A stretch of 61,654 nt of DNA, counting the filler, from Bipalium vagum (taxonomy: Eukaryota): NCBI GenBank assembly GCA_037834085.1. It is 3 parts of 3 records of this genome, joined end to end, with 100 filler letters (N's around TTAATTAATTAA, not from the genome) between each part and the next. Parts side by side here need not be neighbours in the genome. Positions count along the whole stretch, not along the records: positions 1 to 22,319 come from JBBMKC010223121.1; 2 more parts are not named here. The stretch is one strand, 5' to 3'. The position numbers were made by a program, and so were the translations under genes. Of the stretch, positions 601-20,325 are shown piece after piece (within the stretch, counting starts at the first letter, position 1; every line of letters starts with the position of its first letter). The notes beneath the pieces were generated by a model. The model saw nothing but the letters and a program-made list of their open reading frames with translations, did not search any database and was not told the origin of the DNA.

Positions 601-1509
601 ACGTTTTGGCCGTAGCGTATCGCAATACTTGTGTGCGGTACCAGAACACAGTCGTAGATAATGATCACTCCTCGAATTATTATGAGAGCAAAGATAACAA
701 TAATAATCTTAATTATTTTAATAATTTAAATAAAAATAATTGTAATTATATTAATAATCATAATAATGATACAAAAATCCTGGCAAATAATAAAAAAGAT
801 AAAGGTAGGGTGTCATCATATTCCATTTCGCCCGCTGTGACGAAAACGAGAAACACCAATTTTCTTTTATGCAATACCTCAATATCAAAGTCTTTTTCGA
901 ACACCTCAAACTTGGTGACAGGTAACTATATTCTTTTTGATAGCACTGCGTCCATATCAATTCTGGACGGTTGCACTGATTATATCTTGTCTTTTATTGA
1001 TCTGATTAGCATCACAAATGCCTCAGTAATTTTCATTTTATTCCGGCCTCCGTACTCTCACCAACTTATGCTTATCCTCGACTTCACAAAAGAGAGTTGC
1101 TTTATAATTAATCGAACTGGTTCTGTCAACTGCAGTACTGCCTGTTCTTTAACTGACAATTTGAAAGACTTTTTCTTCGACCTTTGAGGCAATAGGGAAA
1201 AGCTTGAGTTGAGTGATTGCCCTCTTCATGAAGGTCGTGGCTCTGGTTTATACTGGAACATCATTTTGTGTAGGATAATAGAAAATTATTCACATGGTCA
1301 GAAATTGATCGGGCTCAACCTTCATGCTATCTGCGAGACCATCCTCTCTTTCAAGACTCTTTCGAATTGTTCTACTGATATTGAACCTGCTCCTGCTGTT
1401 GCTTCCGGTTCTGAATCGAAGAGGTTAAGCTTAGCAAAAAACGTGAAAGAGCCAAAGAAATCTTATCCAAAATTATTGATTTTGACTTTGGCGTCGATGA
1501 AATTTTTGA

Positions 1510-4230
1510 CCTAATTCAGAGTTACTTTCCACTATTACCTGAAAGTATCACTCGTAAACTATATTTCGGTTCGACGTTTTTGCTAATAAGACCAACAGGA
1601 ACATGCTCAGAACCAATTTCAACAAAGATATGAAGAAGACCGTTAATAAAATCCTGAATGATGACGATGTTGACTCCAGACCATCCTTAGAAAAAATTAT
1701 TATTGAACATTTCACACACACTGTTCCGGTCAATCAGACTTGGTGGTTTGGTCTCTTTTGTAACTCGTAACTGGAAGCTGTAGTTAACACAACTCCTGGA
1801 TGTGATGGAATCACCTATAATAATTTGAAAAATATTGATCCTGACGGTCATATTCTTTCCTAGCTGTATAATAAAATAATAGAAAGTGGAAAACTGCCAT
1901 CTGCCTGGACCACTTTTAAGACCTCATTGGTTCCAAAGCCTGGAAAACATTTCCAATACCATCTCGTCTCAAATTGGAGACCCATTGCCTTGCTTTCCAC
2001 TGCATACAAGATCTTTGCAGCTATCCTTTGTCGTCGGCTCAGCTATTGGACTCTACAGAATAATTTTTTGTATTCGACTCAGAAGGGCGGTAGTGAGTAT
2101 GAAGGATGTGTCGAGTGTAATACAGTTCTGTCTGCAGCTCTGGAACACTCCAAATATTTGACTGACTATCCTATCTCGGTGGCATGATTGGATATCCAGG
2201 ATGCGTTTGGAAGCATCCCACATCAATATCTGTGGTCCCTTTTGCGACATATTGGTGTTGGTAACGGTGCTTGAGCTGTTCTACAACAACGTCAGCTTGG
2301 TTTATTCGTGTAGTCCCTTGCTAACTCCGAACCTTCCAATCCGGCGAGGTGTTAGACAAGGATGTCTACTTTCAATGTTGCTCTTTGCAATAGCTATAAA
2401 TCCAGTCATTGAATCGATCTCTTCTGCTCCTGTTCTGTCGTTTATGATTGGTAATTCACCAGTTAGAGTCTTGGCTTACGCTCATGACATTGCCATCATT
2501 GCTCGGAACTCATCTGACCTTCAAACTCTCATCGACACTGTTGTTTCCACCACTGAGTGGTCGGGCATGCACTACCGCCCTGAGAAATGTGCATTTCGCA
2601 ATTCACCGAATGATGGGATGCGTAGTGTCATCTCCATCTATAATGTTCCATCAAAAAATTATCTGAAAATGACTTTTACCAACATTTGGGCGTTCGGGGT
2701 TGACATCGATCAGTCACCATATGAGACCTTGAACAAAATTCTTATTGATCTTGAAAAAATTGCAAATTCCGAATTACACGGGTGGCAAAAATCTAAGTCA
2801 TCTAAAATCTTCCTGCCCTCCCGCCTTGTGTTCCCGTTTAGAACAAGAGAAGTTAAAATTAGTTCTCTTGAACAGTCATCCGATAATTCTGCTGAAAATG
2901 AGAATAAGAGCTTTAAGATCCGAGTATATATTAACATAATACTTAACCTTCCAAAATACGCAGAAACAAATTATTTATATTCATCTGTTGAAGACGGTGG
3001 AGCCGGATTAACAGACATACACGATGCATATTCCATCCAGTCTCTCGTTCAAGGATTCGTCTTCTCACCACTCCTTGCTATTTAACTTTTAAAATCATCT
3101 CTGCTTTGCTTTGTTTGGTTGCTTCAACAAGACTGAAATCCAAGTCCAAGGCTATTTCGACTTGTCTGGAATGGATCAATGGCAGTCACACTTTTAAAAA
3201 TAATAAATCAAAAAAATCATGGTGGTATAGCATCCGACACGCCATTTCAAACTTCAGAAAAGCACATAACATCCTTGCTTCTTTTGAATACGTGAAAGGA
3301 GAATTCCAACTCCACTGCACATCTTACACTAGAAGCACCTCAATCTGTTCTCCACAAAACCGCAAAAAGATCTCACGGATCCTTCATTTATATGTCCATA
3401 GCTCCTATGGATCCAAATGGTTAAACAGCAAACAGAGAAATCTCCTTGCTGAAACCGTGAAACTGAGCCCAATGGTAAAAAAGTTCATTTTCAGTGGGGG
3501 ACTTGGTTCCTTTGGGTTCAATTTCATTCACAAGGCACGGACCAACTTGTTACCAACGTGTTCTAGATTTCCCGATGAAGACACGAAATCCAAACTCTGC
3601 AGGCGCTACAACCAAGAGGAAGAAACAATGAAGCACGCCTTGCAATCCTGTCTCCCAAACAGAACTTTATCTAATGATAGACACAACAACTGCCTCAAAA
3701 TTATCTATGAACCCCTACAGACTCCATCTTTAATCGTTGTGATGAACAAGAGATGCGCACTGCTTCCAAACCCACTTGATCGTGTTGGCTTGATGATCAC
3801 AGATACATTGAAAAAGATCATCTTCCTGGTTGATATCAAATTCCCGATTGATATGTTACAAACATTCAAGGGGCTGATGATAGAAACCTATCAAAATATG
3901 TCAACCTACAAAAAGAACTGAAAAAACTTAAACCAGACCACAAAATCGGATCTCTAGGTACAGTTCCTCCAGAAACCATCAAACTGTTGGTGAAAATCGG
4001 ATTCCCAAAAAAGTAAGTCATCAAGACCCTGAAACAGTGCGCCATCTGCAACATCGAGTTCTCAACCAAAATATGAACTATCATACCACCCGTGTCCTTC
4101 GATTAGACTTTTAACGATATTGTCACAAATTGTAAATATTTCCGCCTATGTATATTGATATTTATCATAATAACATAACTTATTATTTTATGCATTATAA
4201 TGATTATTAAAAAAAATTTTTAAAAAAATT
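1510..4230 (+). mobile_element. Non-LTR retrotransposon with restriction-like endonuclease, NeSL/R5-like (element 1), disrupted
   Basis: RT motifs across frameshifted ORFs: TPGCDGITY, NWRPIALLSTAYKIFAAIL, QKG..GC.E, LDIQDAFGSIPH, RGVRQGCLLSMLLF, LAYAHDI. C-terminus has FIHKARTNLLP, a CRR..EETMKHALQSC knuckle, RHN and FLVDIKFP. An A-rich tail follows near 4210-4240. Confidence 0.92.
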
Positions 4231-4249
4231 AAAAATAGAAAACATCTGT

Positions 4250-4630
4250 TAATTGCACAGTCCATCATTTCAATGACCTTCTTTCTTACCAAATGAAGCA
4301 AATTAAAAGGACAATCAACTCTACGACTACTCAATTGCCGAGGACCAAAAAAAAATTAACTGCCCATCAATCTGTGATACCCTCAACGGGCGATATCTTC
4401 CTGCGATGAAAGCCGGAGCACTATCAAACAGAGTACATTCGCGCAATGCCGATCACCAGTAGAACAAGTCTAGGATCCATGCAGATCCAATATCATTCCT
4501 GTACAAAACTTATAAACTTATTTCGTGAAATAAATCTTTACAATTAAGAATTTTGATTCATTATCTCTCTAAATTTGTTGATATTCGGGTACACAGACGT
4601 TTCCACACCTAAAACGTGGAATTCTCCAAG
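4250..4630 (-). pseudogene. GPCR paralog fragment (ectodomain piece plus TM1-TM2), abutting the 3' end of element 1
   Basis: LVLLVIGIA/ANVLCLIVLR (TM1 with conserved Asn, one frameshift) and VVVELIVLLICFIW. 4545-4600 (SVYPNINKFREI) matches 19100-19160 (SDYPNVHKFREI) of GPCR copy B. Confidence 0.55.
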
Positions 4631-4663
4631 TATTATAAATTCTAAAATAAATTGTCTTTATTG

Positions 4664-4665
<2 letters not shown>

Positions 4666-4727
<62 letters not shown>
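4666..4727. repeat. (TTA)n microsatellite
   Basis: About 20 perfect TTA units. Confidence 0.98.
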
Positions 4728-4730
<3 letters not shown>

Positions 4731-5149
4731 GCTCATTAATGGCTTATTAATTGTACTTTCAGCTACGTCAGTGTCAAATGTAAGTCCCTTTTACTTTCAT
4801 CCTTCCTTATTTATCATCTCTGAAAATGTCTCACTGATATCGTCAATATATTTTTTATGGACAATGGTATAAACATTCCATTTTGTCCAACATTGGCATT
4901 CGGCATCCAGAGGGATTCTTGTATTTGTAGCACTCTCTTTGGAATCGAAGTAGTAAATAACCCATGAGGATTCCGAACGAAAAATTTTTGTTAATATTAT
5001 TAAAAAATCTTAAATTGTGATTTGATCATGTACGTTTTATACAAATAATTTAGAAATATGGTTCACCTGATGGGCTGAAATCTCACTTGCGAAGTTTTAT
5101 TGTATAAAGTAGAAATACGTATACCAAATGTTTTTATACTTACTTACAA

Positions 5150-5400: not shown

Positions 5401-5505
5401 AATCACTCCAATACTCATATTGCATTTTATATATACAGTGCGCGTAAAACGTCTGTTCACCCCCTATGGAAAATACTAATTTTAATTGTGTTAGTTGAAA
5501 AAAAT

Positions 5506-5526
5506 CGGAGATACCGGGATTCAAAC
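5506..5526 (-). tRNA. 3' fragment (T-loop to acceptor end) of a tRNA-Ala-like sequence
   Basis: GTTTGAATCCCGGTATCTCCG is 20/21 identical to 11892-11912 and is followed by the same TTTTCA(A)CTAACA trailer. Confidence 0.75.
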
Positions 5527-8500
5527 GAACAAAATTGTATTTTCACAACAAGTGTTTACATATAATTGAATATAAATCAATTAAACATTTCTGTGAGCCT
5601 GGTATGGTATTTTAATATTAATATTAGATTAGTTTTTCATTACAGTTAGTCAGATTTTCTCCGTCATCATTGTCTGTATGATTTTGTGATTCATCATTGG
5701 CAATATCGCCCAATTCGGATTGAGTCATCTTCTACTTTCCGACATTCCGATGAAAATTCCATTGCGTTGCGCTCCACTTGATATTCGAAGATACACAGAA
5801 TTTTCTGATTTCTGTTGATTCGCTTTTTGAGAACTGCAGATTTTTCAGAATTTCGTCGTTCCGCGTATCCCATGATCCGAGACATCCAACGGCAAAAGTA
5901 TCCAGCATGATTGTTCATTGTGACAAGACCATTTTTGTTTTGTTGAGCAGATCTTCATAATGTCGGTGATTTTTCTCATGATTCCAAAACATGTTGTTTT
6001 CGGTGTCATAAGGGCATTTGATGTCTATGAGAAGAAGACGTTTTTGATTTGTGAATTCGACTTAAAGACCCACTCATTGCGTAGAGTTTATATATTGAAT
6101 CTCTGCGTTGAGAAACACTTTAGCCGTTGTGTTTGGTTTGATCTGTTCCACGAGATAGTCTTGGATTGTATTGTGACTAATGTTCTGAAATATTTTCGAC
6201 TGATCACAGCCAACGAGAACATACGATAAAGTTTCCTCTGGTTCATCACATCTTTGGCATCCTCTGAATGATGATCCGTGTCGAGCATGGATTTGAATAG
6301 AATAGGATCTGGCGCTATGTATGAATTACCATGCAGAAATGGATATTTCACCATTGCATATAGGTCTTGTGAAGATGGATAATTGACCAATTGAAGACGC
6401 GAAACGACCAGCACTGGATTGATTATTCCAGTTGAAGTTCCATGAATGATCAATTAGATGATGAAGAATTTTGAAAATCAACTTGGCATCCTTTAGTTTC
6501 ACAAAAGCTTCATTTTTATAATCTGGGTTGAGTTGTTGGAAAACTTTGAGGCAAATTCCATTTTCGTTCAGTTAAAATTTGACAGATATCTTGTGTCTCC
6601 TTTGCAATTGATTAATTGCGAAACGAGTTTTTCCTCACCAACAATTCTTATGACATTGAATATCTCCAAGATTTAGCCATTCGAAAGCCTGTTCAACTGA
6701 AATCTTCTCTCTCACACCTGGATCAAAAGTGGCAGAGATTAGAGAAGAAACTGACATGTGTCGGATATTTTGAACAGCTGGAACACACTTGCGATCGATT
6801 GAACCAAATATTCATCAGCACCCGAAATAACACCAGCTCCACCAAATGATTTTGGCGTGTAGATATATTTTAAGGAAGACCGAATACCAAGACCAAGAAT
6901 ATTTTTCAAAAGACGACGAATATTTGGTTCTAAGTAATATAGTTATTCCGAAAAGCTAATATCACTCGAGAATGAATGAAGACTTGATGTGCATTCAATT
7001 TCTGCCAAGGATATAGATTGCTTTCAGAGATAACCTTCAACTAATGAATGATTTCTGCAAACAGTGATCTCGGTGGAGAATGGAGATTTTCACAGAAATC
7101 AACGCCCAAATATCGGTACGTTTCATCAATATTCAGTTTGCAGATTGAAGAATCACCAATTTTCAAAGAGTATGCATTTTCCACCTGCGGAATACGGAGA
7201 AAAGCACACTTTGAAGGCCGAAATTTCAAGTGTAGCCAAGATGATATCTGAACTGCGCGATCCAGAAGCTCTTGCATGTGTGGACGACTGGTAGCTAAAA
7301 GTACTAAATTATTCGCATAAGCAAGCGCACTCAACCGATATTTACGAATCAGTACACCACCGCTCAACACTCGATCAATACTATTTAATGTCGGATTCAT
7401 ACCAACATTAAATAACAACATTGAATGTGGACACCCCTGTCGAACGCCAACGTTGATTACAATAGGCTCAGTAATAACATTGCCGCACATGAAATATGAT
7501 TGACAATCACTATACAGAGCATGATCGAGAGCCCACACCCATTTGCCGGAGACAACCAGTAATGAAGAAAATATCGATACTGCCGAAAGAGTCAGCAACA
7601 GCGAGAAAAGCAATATGCAAAGGCATATTCAATTCTCGACGATATCGATCAATCAGATCGCGAAGAACGAAATTATTTTCAGAACAACCGTTGAACGACC
7701 AAGACATTTTTGCATTGGATGCAAAAGATTATTAGCATTCAGTCAGTCAGAAAGTTGTGAAGTTAAAGAAAAAGCGAATATTTTATATGCACATTCAAAA
7801 GAAGCAATTGGTCGCTAAGAGTTTATATCACCATATCTCCTCTTTTCATGGGCTTTGGAATAAGAAGTGTAGAAAAAGATTCCAGCAAGATGGAGAACAA
7901 AAATTTTCCAAAACTCTATTAAATAAAAGAACATGTATTTCCAAAAGTGGATCACAATACTTGATGTCAGAATATGTGAGCCGAATAAAAGGAGCCGAAT
8001 TCTTATATGACTTTAGAAAATCCTTCAATGTCTCACATTTAATTGCGTGAAAATGAAATGGAGTGCCTTCATTTCCTTCGAAGATTGATCAGTCACATGG
8101 AAGAGGATTTACTGATTTTTTATTATAATACTTATTAATATCATCCAATGATAGAGTAAAGTCAGCAACTGTTTTATCAACAATAATTTTAAAAGCAGTC
8201 GAATGAGTGAATCTATACATTTTTCTCAGATTTATATCAGTTGAAGATCTGTTACCGGATGATCTACAGAGAAAGAGATTTTTCTCTTTTATCTGTCGCA
8301 TTTCATAAATGTAGTTTACAACCTTGAGATCAAGTTCATCATTTGAAGAATTGTGGTCAGTACATTCAGAGACGAGATTAGCAGTCATTCATACTCTATC
8401 AACAAAGGTGCTTTGAGATGATACAAAAGAACGAACTTTTCCTAACTTTCCTGGTATCGATGAAGATTTTAAGAGCCAAATCGCATTCGATCTGATTATA

Positions 8501-8760
8501 TCACAATTGATGTTGAACAATGGACGAGAGTTAGCAATAGTCCACATCAGTCCACAAATAAGAGGTCCATTATCTTTTTTAGACTTCATTTTAACGAAAT
8601 TTAATTCAAACAGAACAATGTCATCAATTTAGCAATTGATTCAACTGATGAAAGGAGATCAGTTGTTGACATTTCCTTACACAAATCAAGGTAGTACACG
8701 TTTTTTTTTCGGAACATCACAAACAAAAAGTGTCCAATAGTTCTCATTGTGATCAAATTT
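5527..8760 (-). mobile_element. Non-LTR retrotransposon with Ulp1-like protease, RT, Zn knuckle and RLE, NeSL/R5-like (element 2), disrupted
   Basis: Protease: HNENYWTLFVCD..(V)YYLD and KDNGPLICGLM (8540-8755). RT: LHIAFLAVADSFGSI, GVRQGCPHSMLLFN, LAYANNLVL. Knuckle: CQRCDEPEETLSYVLVGC..HN. RLE: LLIDIKCPYD and AVGCLGSW. 3' UTR runs to about 5527. Confidence 0.92.
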
Positions 8761-10249: not shown

Positions 10250-12140
10250 CTGATGCCAAATAAACTGAACAATTTCCTGATAAATTTGAATTCTCTTTAA
10301 TAATGTCTTTCTGTTCATGGTCATTGATGTATGAAGGTCTGTCAGGGAGTGGTACATCTTCGAGTGATTAATAACCTTTGCTAAATCTTGCACACCACTT
10401 CTAGGCTGCAATTTTTCCCTCAATCTTCATGGATTTCGTTTTGTGCACCATGTTTACTTATTCATTTTTCCAATATTACTCTTCGAATTGTTTCCTCATT
10501 CTGTTTCATTATCGACGTTAATGAAATGTAACTGATCGACTGATCTATAATAGACAGTATGTATCGTAACTCGATACATTCAGCTCTTGTTTTTTGAAAT
10601 CCATATTTTTCCTTCGACCGTTTTCACCAGACCACCTTCCAAAAAACAAAATGTAATTGTCTTTTCAATAACGTCTTTAATCTGATCGATTTTATTTTTC
10701 ATTATACACTAAGAACATGTACCGTACGTTTTTCTCAATAACTTGTCTGCATTCGTGTGCTCAATTGCTTTTCTGTATTTAAGCTCCATAACAAGACTGC
10801 TGAGATAGTTTATCAACGTCTGAAATTGTGAAGTTATTGGTTTTGTCGTCTTGAACATGCACTCTATTGCTTTGTTATCTGTTCTAACTAGAAATTTTTC
10901 CCCAGACAAGTAATGCTTAAAATTGTTACAAAAGTAATAGTTTGTTAATATATCCTTTCTTGTTATTCAATATCCTTTTTCATGAATGTTCATTGCATGT
11001 GATCCATACGCGATCACTCTTTCTTTTCTATTATTGTCTGTCTCTGATAACACTACTCCAATCGCTTCAAAACTGACATCAGTATCTAATATAAACGCAT
11101 TTATAATGTCTGGAAAAGTTAGCACTGGCGTTTTTGTTAGGGACTCTTTCATTTCTTGGAAGTCTACATTGACTGCTTCGGTCCATACTAAATTTCCATT
11201 GTTCTTCCCACACAATTGTTCTAAAACTCTAGATTTTTGTGCATACCCATCTTGAATTTTTTAAGCATTTTGGCGTGTCAAAGGTTCGGATTGCCTCAAT
11301 TGTTGCTGGGTTGGATTTAATTTCTTGTTTGTCAATTACATGTCCTACAAATGTGACTTTTATTCTTAGTAGATTGCATTTCACTGGATTCACTCTTGCT
11401 AATTTTATCCTTTTAGCACTTCATTTAATATGGCTTAATGATGAGGAGGCTAATCAGACCTGGGGAATTTTTTAATTATTTTAATTATTTATTTTAAATA
11501 TTTTAATTTTTTTGAAATATTTAAAAAGTAGGATTTAAATTTTAAAAAAAACTTGTATTAAAAATTTAATAAAAAGAAAAGAAATTACCAGGTTTGAGAT
11601 AATTTGTTTAAATATTACTTGTTATATCACTTCATAAAATATATTCAAAATGTCTTCTATTTCTGATTGCAAACCAATTGATATTAACATGTCGACTACA
11701 CCAGGACACCAACCAACGGACGAGGTCTCGGAAGTTAAAATGTAAAGGCATTGAATGAAGATAAAAGTAAAGAGACTCAGGGCGGTTAAGGGTATCGTTG
11801 TGAGGTTTAAAGGAGGGGGATGTGAGATATATTGAAAATTAGTCGGGGGAAGTAGCTCAGCGGTCATTGCATGCGCATGTAAAGGTCCCGGGTTCGAATC
11901 CCGGTATCTCCGAATAATTTTCACTAACATGGCGACCACGCCACTTTTTTATAATCATAATATCATCTAAATAGACCATCGTAGTTTTTAAATTTCCTGT
12001 AACCTTCGTCATTAGCTCTTGAAAAGTTCCCAGAGCAGCGGCTATACAAAAAGGCAGTCTTGTGAAGAAAAATTGTCCTTCTTTTGTTGAAAGCTCTGTT
12101 TTTCTTGTGAATCCGTCGTCATTTCAACTTTCATCCCATC
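10250..12140 (-). mobile_element. Ty3/gypsy pol remnant (RT-RNase H), split by an insertion at about 11442-11944
   Basis: EKTELSTKEGQFFFTRLPF...VYLDDIMI (11950-12125), continuing LNEVLKRIK..VTFVGHVI (below 11430), TPVLTFPD..FILDTDVS..IAYGS and FLVRTDNKA..HTNAD. Confidence 0.9.
11846..11912 (+). tRNA. tRNA-Ala-like pseudogene or tRNA-derived repeat
   Basis: GGGGAAG TAGCTCAG A-box, GGTTCGAATCCC B-box, perfect T-stem, and the G3:U70 alanine identity pair. The D-arm 3' strand (AGAG) is missing and the anticodon loop is 6 nt, so it is not a canonical functional tRNA. T-runs lie downstream. Confidence 0.8.
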
Positions 12141-14129: not shown

Positions 14130-15770
14130 ATTTGCAATTTCTTGATCGAATATTTTGGCGCCATATTCATTCATTTAGATATAATTCCAAGAGATCACCA
14201 ATTACGCTCATCATTGACACGACTTTAATCCTCCGTTCAAAAATATGTTTTCAACCATACGAAAAATCTAAAGTTCATGATCACGAGCACGTTCTTGGAG
14301 CACGAATTTTGGCAGCCCTTTTTTATTGGATTTTTCAAGAAACAAATCTTACATTTCTTCCTCATTTCTGTATAGAAATTAATAACGACAGATTTTAAAC
14401 CGCCGTCTTTTCAGTAACTGACCTTTTCGATATGACCAGGACCCATAAATTACATAAATGGACACATTTAATTAGAATTATTTTGAATTTTTCAAAAAAA
14501 AGTTTTTCCTAATAGAAAAATATCTATTAGAATTTATGCAAGTTTCCGTATAGTATTGCCTGAAACAAAACCAGTGCATTCCTTGAAAATCGTTCCTCAA
14601 ACATCGCATTTGTTAATATTAATATTACCATAAATTACCTAATATGAATAATGGGCGGTTTTCTGTTAATTAATTAATTAATTAATTAATTAATTAATCT
14701 TAATTACTTCAAATGGAACACCCATCACTCTGGTGTTTATTAATTTATTATTCGAATAAATATAATGGTTTTGAATAATATTTTACAGAGTAAAAAAACG
14801 TATTTATTTATTTTTTTTTTAACTTGAACACCCCTTCGATATGAAACGACAACGATTCAATTCTACATGAGTTCAATATCATTGATTGAAATCTTGTTTT
14901 GATTACGACGGAGATAAATGGAAGAACGTCTTCGAGACCCGAGGACTGACGAGCGATACTACTGTGATTTTAATAAAGATTACGTATGGCAACTCAGAAC
15001 TACCTGAAAATCTACAGGAATCAAAAGTTGAGGAACGATGTTGGTTGTATGGTTGAAGGAGCGATTTTACGCTTAACTGGGTCAGTGTCGAATATGAATA
15101 GAATGATTGCGGCTGGATATCGAGCATAGGCCGTTGTGTTCCCCTTAAAATATCGCCTAATTTCCAACATGAGAATAGTTAAAATCTTCATCTTGAGCAT
15201 ATCCTTGGTTCCCGCGTTCCTATTTTTTTTGGTACTAACACCCTTGTTTAAAACATTGTAGATCCAATTCAAGGGCTCTGTTCTGAGAAATCACCATACT
15301 TTCTGACGACTGTAATCATGTATTTGCTACTTTTTCTTATCCCAATAATCATCTGATGTGATTGTCATATCTGATGTGAATAAGCGAAACAATACCCTTA
15401 AGAGAGCCAGGGGTACTTTAGGTTTAGCTTTGACCATGTTGATTTACGTTATTTGTATTACAGCATTTCATATCGTTTATAATCCTAAGGATCATAAAAA
15501 GAATTTGTGGAAGGACATATATGTACAATTTACGCTTAGGGTGTTCTTGGGCATAGCACCGGTGATTGAATTGTTAGAATATATATTTATGAAACTGTCT
15601 TTTCAGTTGTTCTACATAACCCTCGACAAAAAAATTCTGAAGAGTTCCAAAGACTTCATCAAAAATTCAAAGAATCGTTTGAACAAAAAAGCTTTGGACT
15701 ACCTTCTCCAGCTCCTGTCATTTATCATTTTTGGAAATTTTTCAATCGCAAAAAATTAGAATTTTTCATT
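14130..15770 (+). pseudogene. Rhodopsin-like GPCR copy A, disrupted
   Basis: TM3 NDVGCMVEG...AGYRA*AVVFPLKY (TAG at 15127-15129), TM6-TM7 in ORF 15358-15759, and a 45-nt intron at 15562-15606 (GIAP|LFYI). 14130-14640 is only tentatively ectodomain. Confidence 0.8.
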
Positions 15771-17849: not shown

Positions 17850-19522
17850 GCGGATGAAAGTGCGATTGATCTCGCAAATGTCAGTTGAAGATAGTCAGAC
17901 TTTCCGAAAGATTTCTGTTCAAACTTTAAATTGAATTTTTTTTATCTAGGGATATGTAAAACAACTGAAAAGAAAATTTCATTACATTACATTGAATAAG
18001 AAACTTACTTACCGGTGCTATGCCATAGGCTGCTGTGGTAGTAAACTTAAGTAACAAGGTGTCACTAAAATTCTTTCTATCACCTTTTGAATTACTGACC
18101 ACCAAGTAAAGTATAATACAGACACAGTAAAGCAACATACTAAGCCCTATGCCCAAAGTACCCCTGGATCTTTTTATTGTACTCTTTCTTATATTAAAAT
18201 CGGATCTTACCATCACAAATTTGATGATATTGGACACATGATAAAAAACTTACGATTAACGAAATGAAATATAGAATCAAATTAAAAAAAATTTCACCAT
18301 AAAAAGGGGTGATCTAAGAGAACAATCACCTAAAATTGGATGAATGGTGTACCAGATCAGAGTGTTAACACCACAGACGAAAATAGTGACCTTGGTGCAA
18401 AATATATGCTTAATATCAAGATAGTAACTATTCTCATGTTAGAAACTAAGTAATATTTTGAGGGAAACACAACGCCCCATGCTCGATATCCAGCTTCTAC
18501 CATCTTATTCATATTCGAAATAAACACAGACACGCTATAAATTGTCCCTTCAACCGTGCATCCAACGTCGTTCCCCATCGACTAATTCATGTGAATTTTC
18601 AAGTAGTTTTGTGTGGCTTCGAATGGGATGCAAATCGCGTTAGTTATGAGATCAGGAATAATTATTCCAAGGATTATTCTATAAAAGATAAATTTCCATA
18701 AGGATTTTGATACAATTATTATGACTCCACACCACAAATTTCCAAAAACTCTTAAGAAGCAAAGCACAATGCTTAACGATACCAAGTGAGAATCTTCGAA
18801 AACTTTATCTGCTGACATACTAAATGAGAGAGAAAGTATCATTTTTATAAGAGCACTCTTTAGTGACGACAATGATTGGCTTGTAGAAATCCTACTTCTT
18901 CTTCCAAAGGAAAAGATGTCAAAGATATTTTGTATTGATAAAGTTCAGAGAATTGCAGAGGATATCCAATTTTGTTAACTTAATTATTTAATTTTTGTCT
19001 TCTTTAAGTCTGGAAATCTTCTTCGATTTTTCATTAGATATTATAGGGTACTTTAAAAAGTAACAGGGTTCGATGTTTCACTTTTGTTATAAAATGGATT
19101 AAAAATTTTAGTTCGTTATCTCTCTAAATTTGTGTACATTAGGGTAATCAGACGCTTTATTTTCAATTTCTTTCCTCTTTTTTTCTCAGTTGATTCTTTG
19201 GATATTCCTCTGTAGTTGTCATTACCTGAAGTTCCGGACAACTATCATCAAAATCTACTTGTGATGATTCTTAACCATTTGTAATTCTTCGCTTCTCTCT
19301 CAACCTCACGTCTTTCTTCTAAAGTCTTCATGTTGTTTTTTATATTTAAATCGGTCTCTATTTCTTCTATCCAATCATGGCGTTCTTCGTCTAGGAATTC
19401 AATTATGAGATCAGCTGATTCAGCTGAAATTTGAAAATAGAGTATGGTAAAAGCCAGTTACTAAAAGTACTTATTAGTAGGTAGATGGTCAGAATAATAT
19501 GAAGATGCCCACCGACTAACAT
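17850..19522 (-). pseudogene. Rhodopsin-like GPCR copy B with signal peptide and long ectodomain, disrupted
   Basis: Exon 1 at 19522-19462 (MLVGGHLHIILTIYLLISTF), 38-nt intron 19461-19424, then ectodomain. TM1 LRVFGN, TM2 IIIPDL, N*SMGNDVGC, GYRAWGVVFPSKY, ECL2 LGDC, TM6-TM7 with a 48-nt intron (18012-17965) at the same site as copy A. Confidence 0.82.
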
Positions 19523-20084: not shown

Positions 20085-20325
20085 CCGAGGACTTCTATAT
20101 CTTCGCATTGCTCTTTATTTTTAAGTCAGTCTCTATTTCTTGTGTCCATTCATGACAGTTTTGTTTGAGGAATTCAATTATAAGATCTGCTGATTCAGCT
20201 GAAAATGGGTAAATAGAGTAAAGTAATAACAAGAGTTATTAAAGTCTTTATTACCCAACCGATTACATAACAGGAAAGAAAATGGAGAATAATTTCAAAC
20301 AATATTGATGAAACATTTTTTATTT
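20085..20325 (-). pseudogene. 5' fragment of another GPCR paralog (direct repeat of about 19310-19480)
   Basis: ESADLIIEFLKQNCHEWTQEIETDLKIK versus ESADLIIEFLDEERHDWIEEIETDLNIK, with the same tttcag acceptor. Confidence 0.75.

Follow-up and report, generated by a model that had tools for sequence, protein, structure and literature searches.

A decayed R2/NeSL-type LINE of Bipalium vagum and its probable site-specific insertion into the tRNA-Ala-like long terminal repeat of a TRIM retrotransposon

Long interspersed nuclear elements (LINEs) may use another mobile element as their target, as in Xenopus, where Tx1L targets the transposon Tx1D. Targets of this kind and tRNA genes both figure in the work of Kojima and Jurka (2015, PMC4640811), which names transposons among the targets of LINEs and reports NeSL-related LINEs specific for tRNA genes, namely NeSL-1_TV (tRNA-Pro) and the planarian families LIN15_SM (tRNA-Arg) and LIN25_SM (tRNA-Glu). 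The domain order of Ulp1 protease, reverse transcriptase (RT), CCHC zinc knuckle and restriction-like endonuclease (RLE) is that of nematode NeSL and of Utopia-1_TSP, with Ulp1 present in some, not all, members of the clade (PMC4640811). A recently defined class of non-autonomous elements, Helenus or 'TRIMp3', comprises miniature terminal-repeat retrotransposons (TRIMs) with a tRNA-like sequence in their long terminal repeat (LTR) (Kojima 2024, PMC10886601). Here, these systems are compared with a LINE copy found on the minus strand, at 5527-8750, of a 61,654-nt stretch of the Bipalium vagum assembly GCA_037834085.1 (hereafter, the window). We consider it highly probable that this copy is the dead, 5'-truncated remnant of an R2/NeSL-type LINE that inserts site-specifically into the LTR of a TRIM, between positions 76 and 77 of the LTR unit.

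The insertion site and its target

On the minus strand of the window, the 3' untranslated region (UTR) of the LINE ends ...ACAATTTTGTTC at 5527 and is followed directly by 38 nt (5526-5489). These 38 nt represent positions 77-114 of a 114-bp TRIM LTR and comprise the last base of the T-stem 5' strand, the T-loop, the T-stem 3' strand, the acceptor 3' strand and a 17-18-nt trailer ending in ..CTAACA. They match, trailer included, the 3' part of a tRNA-like sequence located at 11846-11929 on the plus strand. The genome to which the window belongs (440 Mb in 272,664 contigs) was searched for further copies, and 30 LINE 3' ends were retrieved, of which 27 were readable. In 26 of these 27, the LINE passes into unit positions 77-114 at the identical nucleotide, and all 26 of these full junctions carry the LTR-specific trailer; the remaining copy (L014) retains the first ~11 nt. 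Diverged subfamilies with 3' UTRs only 71-77% identical (L027, L029, L030, C149199) use the identical junction. Immediately after ..CTAACA, the flanks either turn unrelated or run into a common 131-bp sequence. According to the Rfam alignment, the T-stem 5' strand corresponds to unit positions 73-77 and the T-loop to 78-84, and the 3' junction between unit positions 76 and 77 falls at tRNA positions 52/53, the first two bases of the B-box consensus. The terminal GTTC of the LINE repeats the first four nucleotides of the downstream target, generating a GTTC-GTTC junction that may reflect pairing of the RNA end with the nicked target.

Genome-wide pattern searches identified 295 occupied junctions (25-nt pattern, up to 2 mismatches) and either 1,059 empty sites (30-nt pattern, up to 2 mismatches) or 556 and 554 empty sites for the two variants of the trailer (longer patterns, up to 3 mismatches), with reversed-pattern controls yielding 0 matches throughout. 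Approximately one LTR site in five is hence occupied. The target repeat amounts to ~0.04% of the genome, and chance is therefore no explanation for the shared junction.

In contrast to the fixed 3' junction, the 5' junctions are ragged. Fourteen copies are cut at 14 different LINE positions and have the unit, from position 1 to positions 58-73, directly upstream. The LINE positions range from 1207 to 4904 on a 5,064-nt mapping scaffold, composed of three natural pieces (L066, L062 and the window copy), which serves for BLAST coordinates only and represents neither a consensus nor a repaired element. Where the 5' junction can be read cleanly (13 copies), the last unit position is in most cases between 68 and 73, the LINE is joined to it through microhomology of 1-11 nt or filler of 1-15 nt, and the loss of target is usually ~3-9 bp (unit positions 73/74-76), being larger in some copies. 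The LTR-specific leader is found at all 14 of these 5' junctions, and the LINE is sense-oriented throughout. A fixed 3' junction combined with ragged 5' junctions and a small target loss, which R2 also shows, marks the copies as products of target-primed insertion that occurred independently at a single site. In mechanistic terms, the RLE would nick the bottom strand at 76/77, the RT would prime at this nick (target-primed reverse transcription, TPRT) and second-strand cleavage would occur a few bp upstream. An inserted LINE, at least 5 kb when full-length, would part the A box from the remaining B box and should thus disable the RNA polymerase III (pol III) module of the LTR. A candidate preference for GTGAAGG, seen at all 12 scorable 5' junctions, was rejected, since the GTAAAGG variant is itself rare (41 exact copies).

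The 114-bp target unit opens with a leader of 25 nt, whose first bases are TGTGAG, continues with a tRNA-like module of 72 nt and closes with a trailer of 17 nt that has CTAACA at its end; it is present in more than 1,000 copies. Among 21 solo units, 16 are flanked by an exact direct repeat of at least 5 bp, and 4 more by repeats matching at 4 of 5 positions. A complete element (L042) comprises a 114-bp LTR, a 131-bp internal region and a 115-bp LTR, for a total of 360 bp, bounded by the target-site duplication (TSD) TAGTT. The internal region opens with TGGCGACCAC.. directly after the ..CA of the 5' LTR, its TGG, the complement of CCA, being of primer-binding site (PBS) form. It closes with a polypurine tract (PPT), ..AAAGGAGGGGGA, next to the TG with which the 3' LTR begins; this holds for the window (11809-11820), L039, L042 and L053. 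The TG..CA ends, the 5-bp TSDs, the putative PBS and the PPT identify the unit as the LTR of a TRIM. The element has two direct terminal repeats, a short non-coding interior, a TSD, a PPT and, in its LTR, A (TAGCTCAGCGG) and B (GGTTCGAATCC) boxes that are both visible and intact. The target is hence the LTR of a 360-bp Helenus-type TRIM ("TRIMp3"), not a working tRNA gene. The 4-bp TSD of animal Helenus is not observed; 5 bp is the length in the 16 solo LTRs mentioned above and in three full TRIMs, which indicates a different autonomous partner and does not place the element outside the Helenus group.

The tRNA-like module of the better copies scores 43.7-48.4 bits on the Rfam tRNA model (gathering score 29), with the whole model covered. 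Its anticodon loop has 6 nt in the Rfam alignment and ARAGORN returns 'tRNA-??? anticodon (cg)', features at odds with a functional tRNA-Ala, and the module is probably non-functional. In the acceptor stem, the 5' strand GGGGATG can be read as pairing with TATCTCC to give G3:T70, that is, the G3:U70 identity pair, and this pair and the 5' end support a tRNA-Ala ancestry of the module, not its function.

A preliminary description of the locus had noted, on the basis of one junction, that the LINE 3' UTR is joined directly, and in the same sense, to the 3' part of a tRNA-Ala-like sequence, and had proposed a site-specific cut in the B box/T-loop of tRNA-Ala. The junction extends to the genome through the 295 occupied junctions against none in the control, and site-specific insertion, at the edge of the T-stem and B box of the tRNA-Ala-like sequence, through 26 of 27 3' junctions and 14 5' junctions; the random 3' flanks that would have spoken for unspecific insertion were not seen in other copies. 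The identity of the target as tRNA-Ala, by contrast, must be abandoned in favor of the TRIM LTR, given the 6-nt anticodon loop and the consistent presence of LTR trailer and leader at the junctions. The same description had entertained the possibility that the tRNA fragment was a separate piece brought next to the LINE by deletion. Such juxtaposition is excluded by the 14 copies with the complementary 5' part, but the fragment does belong to another element, namely the LTR.

The uninterrupted tRNA-Ala-like copy reported at 11846 is also present, as part of an empty-site TRIM LTR (11821-11929, plus strand) in which the tRNA-Ala-like module (11846-11912) has a 5-nt deletion. Due to this deletion, the copy remains below the Rfam tRNA threshold (28.6 versus 29 bits) and is not called by ARAGORN, which reports no tRNA in the window. 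The LTR belongs to a partial TRIM (11686-11944, plus strand) with the order 5' LTR stub, PBS, interior, PPT, LTR, PBS stub. The 5' LTR is reduced to the residue AACA (11686-11689), the internal region (11690-11820) contains a mutated PBS-like sequence (TGTCGAC.., 11690-11707) in addition to the PPT (11809-11820), and the LTR is followed directly by a 15-nt PBS fragment (TGGCGACCACGCCAC, 11930-11944) and then by unrelated sequence. The succession of LTR and PBS stub suggests either an aberrant product of reverse transcription or integration, or a tandem TRIM remnant. Elsewhere in the genome, the C-terminus of a mariner/Tc1-type transposase (..HPPYSPDLAPSDYHLF..) was observed just 3' of a solo or 3' LTR (L039), evidence of a further transposable-element family.

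Alternative explanations

The copies end in the same 38 nt, their flanks diverge after ..CTAACA and the short unit is very abundant, all of which would also fit a LINE/SINE partnership, wherein the 38 nt are the LINE's own 3' tail, shared with a mobilised tRNA-derived short interspersed nuclear element (SINE), and there is no target specificity. This explanation is very improbable. A shared tail does not account for the 14 differently truncated copies with unit positions 1-~72 immediately upstream, the unit displays the hallmarks of an LTR, not of a SINE, and TSDs enclose the LTR or the TRIM, not the LINE plus its tail, as a partner pair would require. The tail itself also tells against it. 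The two trailer variants are equally common among empty units (554 A, 556 B), and the agreement expected if the tail came from LINE RNA is ~50% per case (0.5^6 = 0.016 for six cases). Six TRIMs carry a LINE in their 5' LTR, and in all six the trailer after the LINE is of the variant seen in the TRIM's own 3' LTR; both cases of variant B are among them, and one of the six shows agreement at a second polymorphism too. The 38-nt tail after the LINE is target DNA. As a separate observation, the two LTR trailers of L042 differ by an indel (5' ..TTTTCACTAACA, 3' ..TTTTCAACTAACA) and at a few other sites, so the A/B variant is not always fixed within one element. The initial impression that variant A (..CAACTAACA) was special to occupied units was dismissed as sampling bias, in view of the even counts among empty units. 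The identity of the 3' junction in all copies could, on the other hand, derive from one ancestral insertion into an LTR that was multiplied thereafter along with its TRIM or through segmental duplication, truncation being mimicked by secondary deletions. We assign this scenario an equally slight likelihood, because the 14 5' junctions all differ, though not on the target side, and bear the filler and microhomology that are typical when TPRT has taken place separately, outer flanks are unrelated, and subfamilies 25% diverged share the site. Moreover, the LINE is present in one LTR only in six TRIMs (L002, L007, L009, L016, L018, L024), although the replication of LTRs would tend to leave a copy in each; in L007 and L002 the whole TRIM is preserved within a 5-bp duplication (GTCAC and ATTAT, respectively), with a truncated LINE in the 5' LTR and a LINE-free 3' LTR, as for a LINE that entered a TRIM already in place. 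The variably truncated LINE parts, preceded on the 5' side by a short sequence of pol III type, are further reminiscent of U6-L1 retrocopies, and template switching would yield such chimeras if the RT left the LINE RNA and continued on a transcript made from the unit by pol III. Here it is scarcely credible: the upstream piece starts at the first base of the LTR (TGTGAG), 25 nt before the tRNA-like +1, and ends within the T-stem instead of where an RNA would end, the remainder of the unit is found across the LINE, and LTR or TRIM TSDs enclose the composite. The concordance of the tails, the upstream pieces and the TRIM TSDs jointly rule out a shared tail, a single amplified insertion and template switching.

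An alternative of a different kind, and an unlikely one, holds that genuine tRNA-Ala genes are the real ancestral target and that the TRIM LTRs are numerically dominant decoys retaining the recognized ~20-30 bp. The cut does lie where the unit most resembles a tRNA (T-arm and B box), the unit retains the GGGGATGTAGCTCAG start and G3:U70, and related LINEs hit true tRNA genes (PMC4640811). Nonetheless, the 26 full junctions on the 3' side and the 14 on the 5' side all lie within the LTR, an argument weakened by the probable ~50:1 excess of LTRs over tRNA-Ala genes, and a link between LINE lineage and trailer variant (p = 0.005) hints at recognition, or history, tied to LTR-specific sequence. 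This link was assessed in a small sample (L001-L030; last 40 nt of the LINE and next 42 nt), in which a G in the 3' UTR (..TTGT[G/T]AAAATAC..) is accompanied by variant A in 12 of 14 copies and a T by variant B in 4 of 4 (Fisher p = 0.0049). Since the trailer derives from the target, different LINE lineages must have entered different TRIM subfamilies, either through different periods of activity or through recognition reaching ~30 bp downstream of the cut. It may tentatively be proposed, with more doubt than confidence, that the LINE has specialized in parasitizing another retrotransposon, and not tRNA genes, with recognition extending into LTR-specific sequence and lineages tracking TRIM subfamilies. 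If so, the LINE would be a natural antagonist of the TRIM, each insertion splitting the A from the B box, as well as the first RLE LINE specialized on a TRIMp3 LTR, with a protein that reads a B-box-containing site.

Several observations weigh against the preferred reading, that of a site-specific R2/NeSL-type LINE in the TRIM LTR. Approximately 9 of the 23 observed 5' breakpoints lack the 5' part of the unit, and among them is the window copy, where the absence of the tRNA 5' half from the flank of the truncated end (8750), remarked upon in the preliminary description, was verified; larger target deletions, nested insertions or rearrangements may be responsible. No full-length copy or true 5' end was seen among the copies, nor any intact open reading frame (ORF), the longest open stretch being 390 aa (L015), and the activity of the LINE and its cleavage specificity are deduced from sequence. 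The NeSL assignment is a putative one and follows domain order. The putative PBS of the TRIM is tRNA-Arg-like by our own reading of the sequence, and the complementary tRNA was not identified in the genome. Lastly, with none of 26 junctions outside the LTR, occasional hits in genuine tRNA-Ala genes may still occur.

The LINE family and other elements in the window

The window copy (5527-8750, minus strand) is a 5'-truncated, decayed RLE LINE with many stops and frameshifts, and it covers ~3.2 kb of a family that spans at least 5.06 kb, given that other copies extend at least 1.8 kb further 5'. Its 3' UTR (5527-5623, minus strand), of ~97 nt including the terminal GTTC, was delimited by means of L015, where the open frame stops ~95 nt before the end of the element. 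Proceeding upstream on the same strand, the copy contains the RLE core motif ..IDIK.., corresponding to the D-x-K of PD-(D/E)xK (6005-6037), a CCHC zinc knuckle in which His is replaced by Tyr (6206-6259), and an RT domain (7044-7728; RVT_1 E 1.4e-10, R2Bm 8gh6_A E 1.2e-11) whose YADD has decayed to YANN. In the Protein Data Bank, the RT is matched best by R2 RTs, R2Bm among them (E 1e-11 to 1e-8), compared with ~0.1 for L1 ORF2p. For L015, a better preserved copy with an open frame of 390 aa, the C-terminal part can be aligned with the zinc knuckle and endonuclease of R2 (9nl2_A, E 6.6e-9) over R2 residues 940-1114, which include the Cys/His motif and D...D-x-K.

At its 5' end, the window copy preserves the tail of a second, degenerate Ulp1-like segment (8542-8750, minus strand; NYW.. 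and ..GPLICG), in which other residues stand in place of the catalytic His and Cys. This copy lacks the catalytic Ulp1 domain itself, whose position in the family is 5' of the truncation point at 8750. In longer copies, the upstream part encodes a CxxC..CxxC motif, an Ulp1 protease and the second Ulp1-like segment; the protease of L071 matches Peptidase_C48 (E 5.4e-9) and has the His/Asp/Cys motifs. The two segments form a tandem pair 5' of the window truncation point (L071:577-1646, L062:1278-1730) and are 32% identical over 69 aa (BLASTP E 3e-4), with NYW and DSG at the replaced His and Cys of the second, which looks like a pseudo-protease duplicate. The Ulp1-RT-RLE composition originally ascribed to the window copy therefore stands for RT and RLE, whereas Ulp1 is represented in the window by the degenerate tail and in longer members by Peptidase_C48. 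A non-LTR RT, C-terminal CCHC and PD-(D/E)xK motifs and an N-terminal Ulp1 were all found, as in RLE-type non-LTR elements, and insertion is site-specific by junctions and genome counts, as in RLE LINEs of the NeSL clade or R2 group. The element would accordingly be of single-ORF R2/NeSL type, encoding an N-terminal Cys motif, Ulp1, a degenerate Ulp1 duplicate, RT, CCHC and RLE. The family may be extinct, as no intact ORF was seen.

Read data provide some further information on the family. In a second sequencing run, LINE contigs are 90-95% alike, and contigs assembled from reads show the LINE to be a high-copy repeat. Relative to other family members, the window copy has two small internal deletions of ~31 nt each; at 6932-6934 and 8592-8593, contigs of two public runs hold 32 and 31 extra nt, respectively. 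A homologous-protein search with the 390-aa C-terminal frame gave no match at E <= 1e-5, a result that the length window makes weakly informative, and a protein-cluster search with the LINE protein returned eukaryotic clusters only, most commonly from Arthropoda and Mollusca. Rfam scans revealed no hepatitis delta virus (HDV)-like ribozyme and no RNA family over threshold in the window, and likewise none in the most 5' LINE pieces available, which do not include the 5' end.

The window also contains a second, different RT-CCHC-RLE LINE family ('element 1'; 2201-4500, plus strand, probably starting at ~1000), with open frames of 294 and 271 aa, the motifs YAHD and ..VDIKFP.., and a 3' region that has at least 191 candidate genome copies at 81-90% identity. 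Additional repeats include an (ATT)n microsatellite from ~4660, an inverted pair of ~650 bp (14989-15634, plus strand, and 17937-18617, minus strand; 66% identical, E 8e-42) and short repeats at 19316-19476 and 20092-20253 (77%).

Comparison with known systems

Sequence-specific RLE LINEs such as R2, NeSL, R4 and Utopia are models of TPRT and are in development as programmable or safe-harbor insertion tools, and each new natural specificity adds another case of protein-DNA recognition. In the case presented here, the cut borders on the B box, which is the most conserved of the pol III promoter elements, and the multicopy safe haven is the LTR of another retrotransposon of the recently defined TRIMp3/Helenus class. 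Hundreds of independent insertions with both junctions constitute a data set on 5'-junction formation (microhomology, filler, small deletions). The analysis further records a Helenus-type TRIM that has 5-bp duplications and a module derived from tRNA-Ala, and provides a warning for annotation, inasmuch as more than 1,000 'tRNA-Ala pseudogenes' in this genome are LTRs.

The RT and CCHC-RLE regions find their best matches in R2, which inserts into 28S ribosomal DNA and shares the fixed 3' junction, variable truncation, small deletions and co-orientation with the target. R2 differs in the target itself and in bearing N-terminal zinc-finger and Myb motifs where the present LINE has Ulp1 and CxxC..CxxC. 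Tx1L is likewise a sequence-specific LINE with a mobile element as its multicopy target, but it is of apurinic endonuclease (APE) type (Tx1/L1 group) and resides in a DNA transposon, whereas the present LINE is of RLE type and resides in the pol III module of an LTR retrotransposon.

The NeSL-related LINEs of tRNA genes have the same RT-CCHC-RLE arrangement and also insert sequence-specifically within tRNA-type sequence. They sit, however, in genuine tRNA genes of other isotypes, in the anticodon arm or the 5' part (S6 Fig, PMC4640811), as opposed to the T-stem/B-box edge of a tRNA-Ala-like pseudo-tRNA within an LTR, and the putative kinship is drawn from domain order. The specificity, which the preliminary description did not recognize from earlier work, appears undescribed for this site and target, but tRNA-directed LINEs as such (tRNA-Pro, -Arg and -Glu) had been reported in 2015 (PMC4640811). 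The full-text literature search yielded no account of an RLE LINE at the B-box edge of a tRNA-Ala-like sequence or in the LTR of a TRIM or Helenus element.

The target TRIM, in turn, has in common with Helenus the short LTRs with A and B boxes, a PPT ahead of the 3' LTR, numerous solo LTRs and a tRNA-like portion that is unlikely to be functional, and it has a putative PBS after the 5' LTR, where Helenus has its PBS. Its 360 bp fall within the published Helenus range of 311-1263 bp (PMC10886601), and its 5-bp TSD contrasts with the 4 bp of animal Helenus, 5 bp having been reported for fungal and plant Helenus (PMC10886601). No sequence match to the target LTR was found in the supplements of PMC10886601. 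The use of tRNA genes or pol III-related sites as safe havens is shared with Dada (PMC3706591, PMC8869645), Ty3 and the Dictyostelium TRE elements, yet Dada are DNA transposons, and Ty3 and TRE insert beside tRNA genes via pol III factors, not inside them at a fixed nucleotide. Viewed against these systems, the class of mechanism appears ordinary, and it is the target and the relation of a LINE living within a TRIM that appear to be new.

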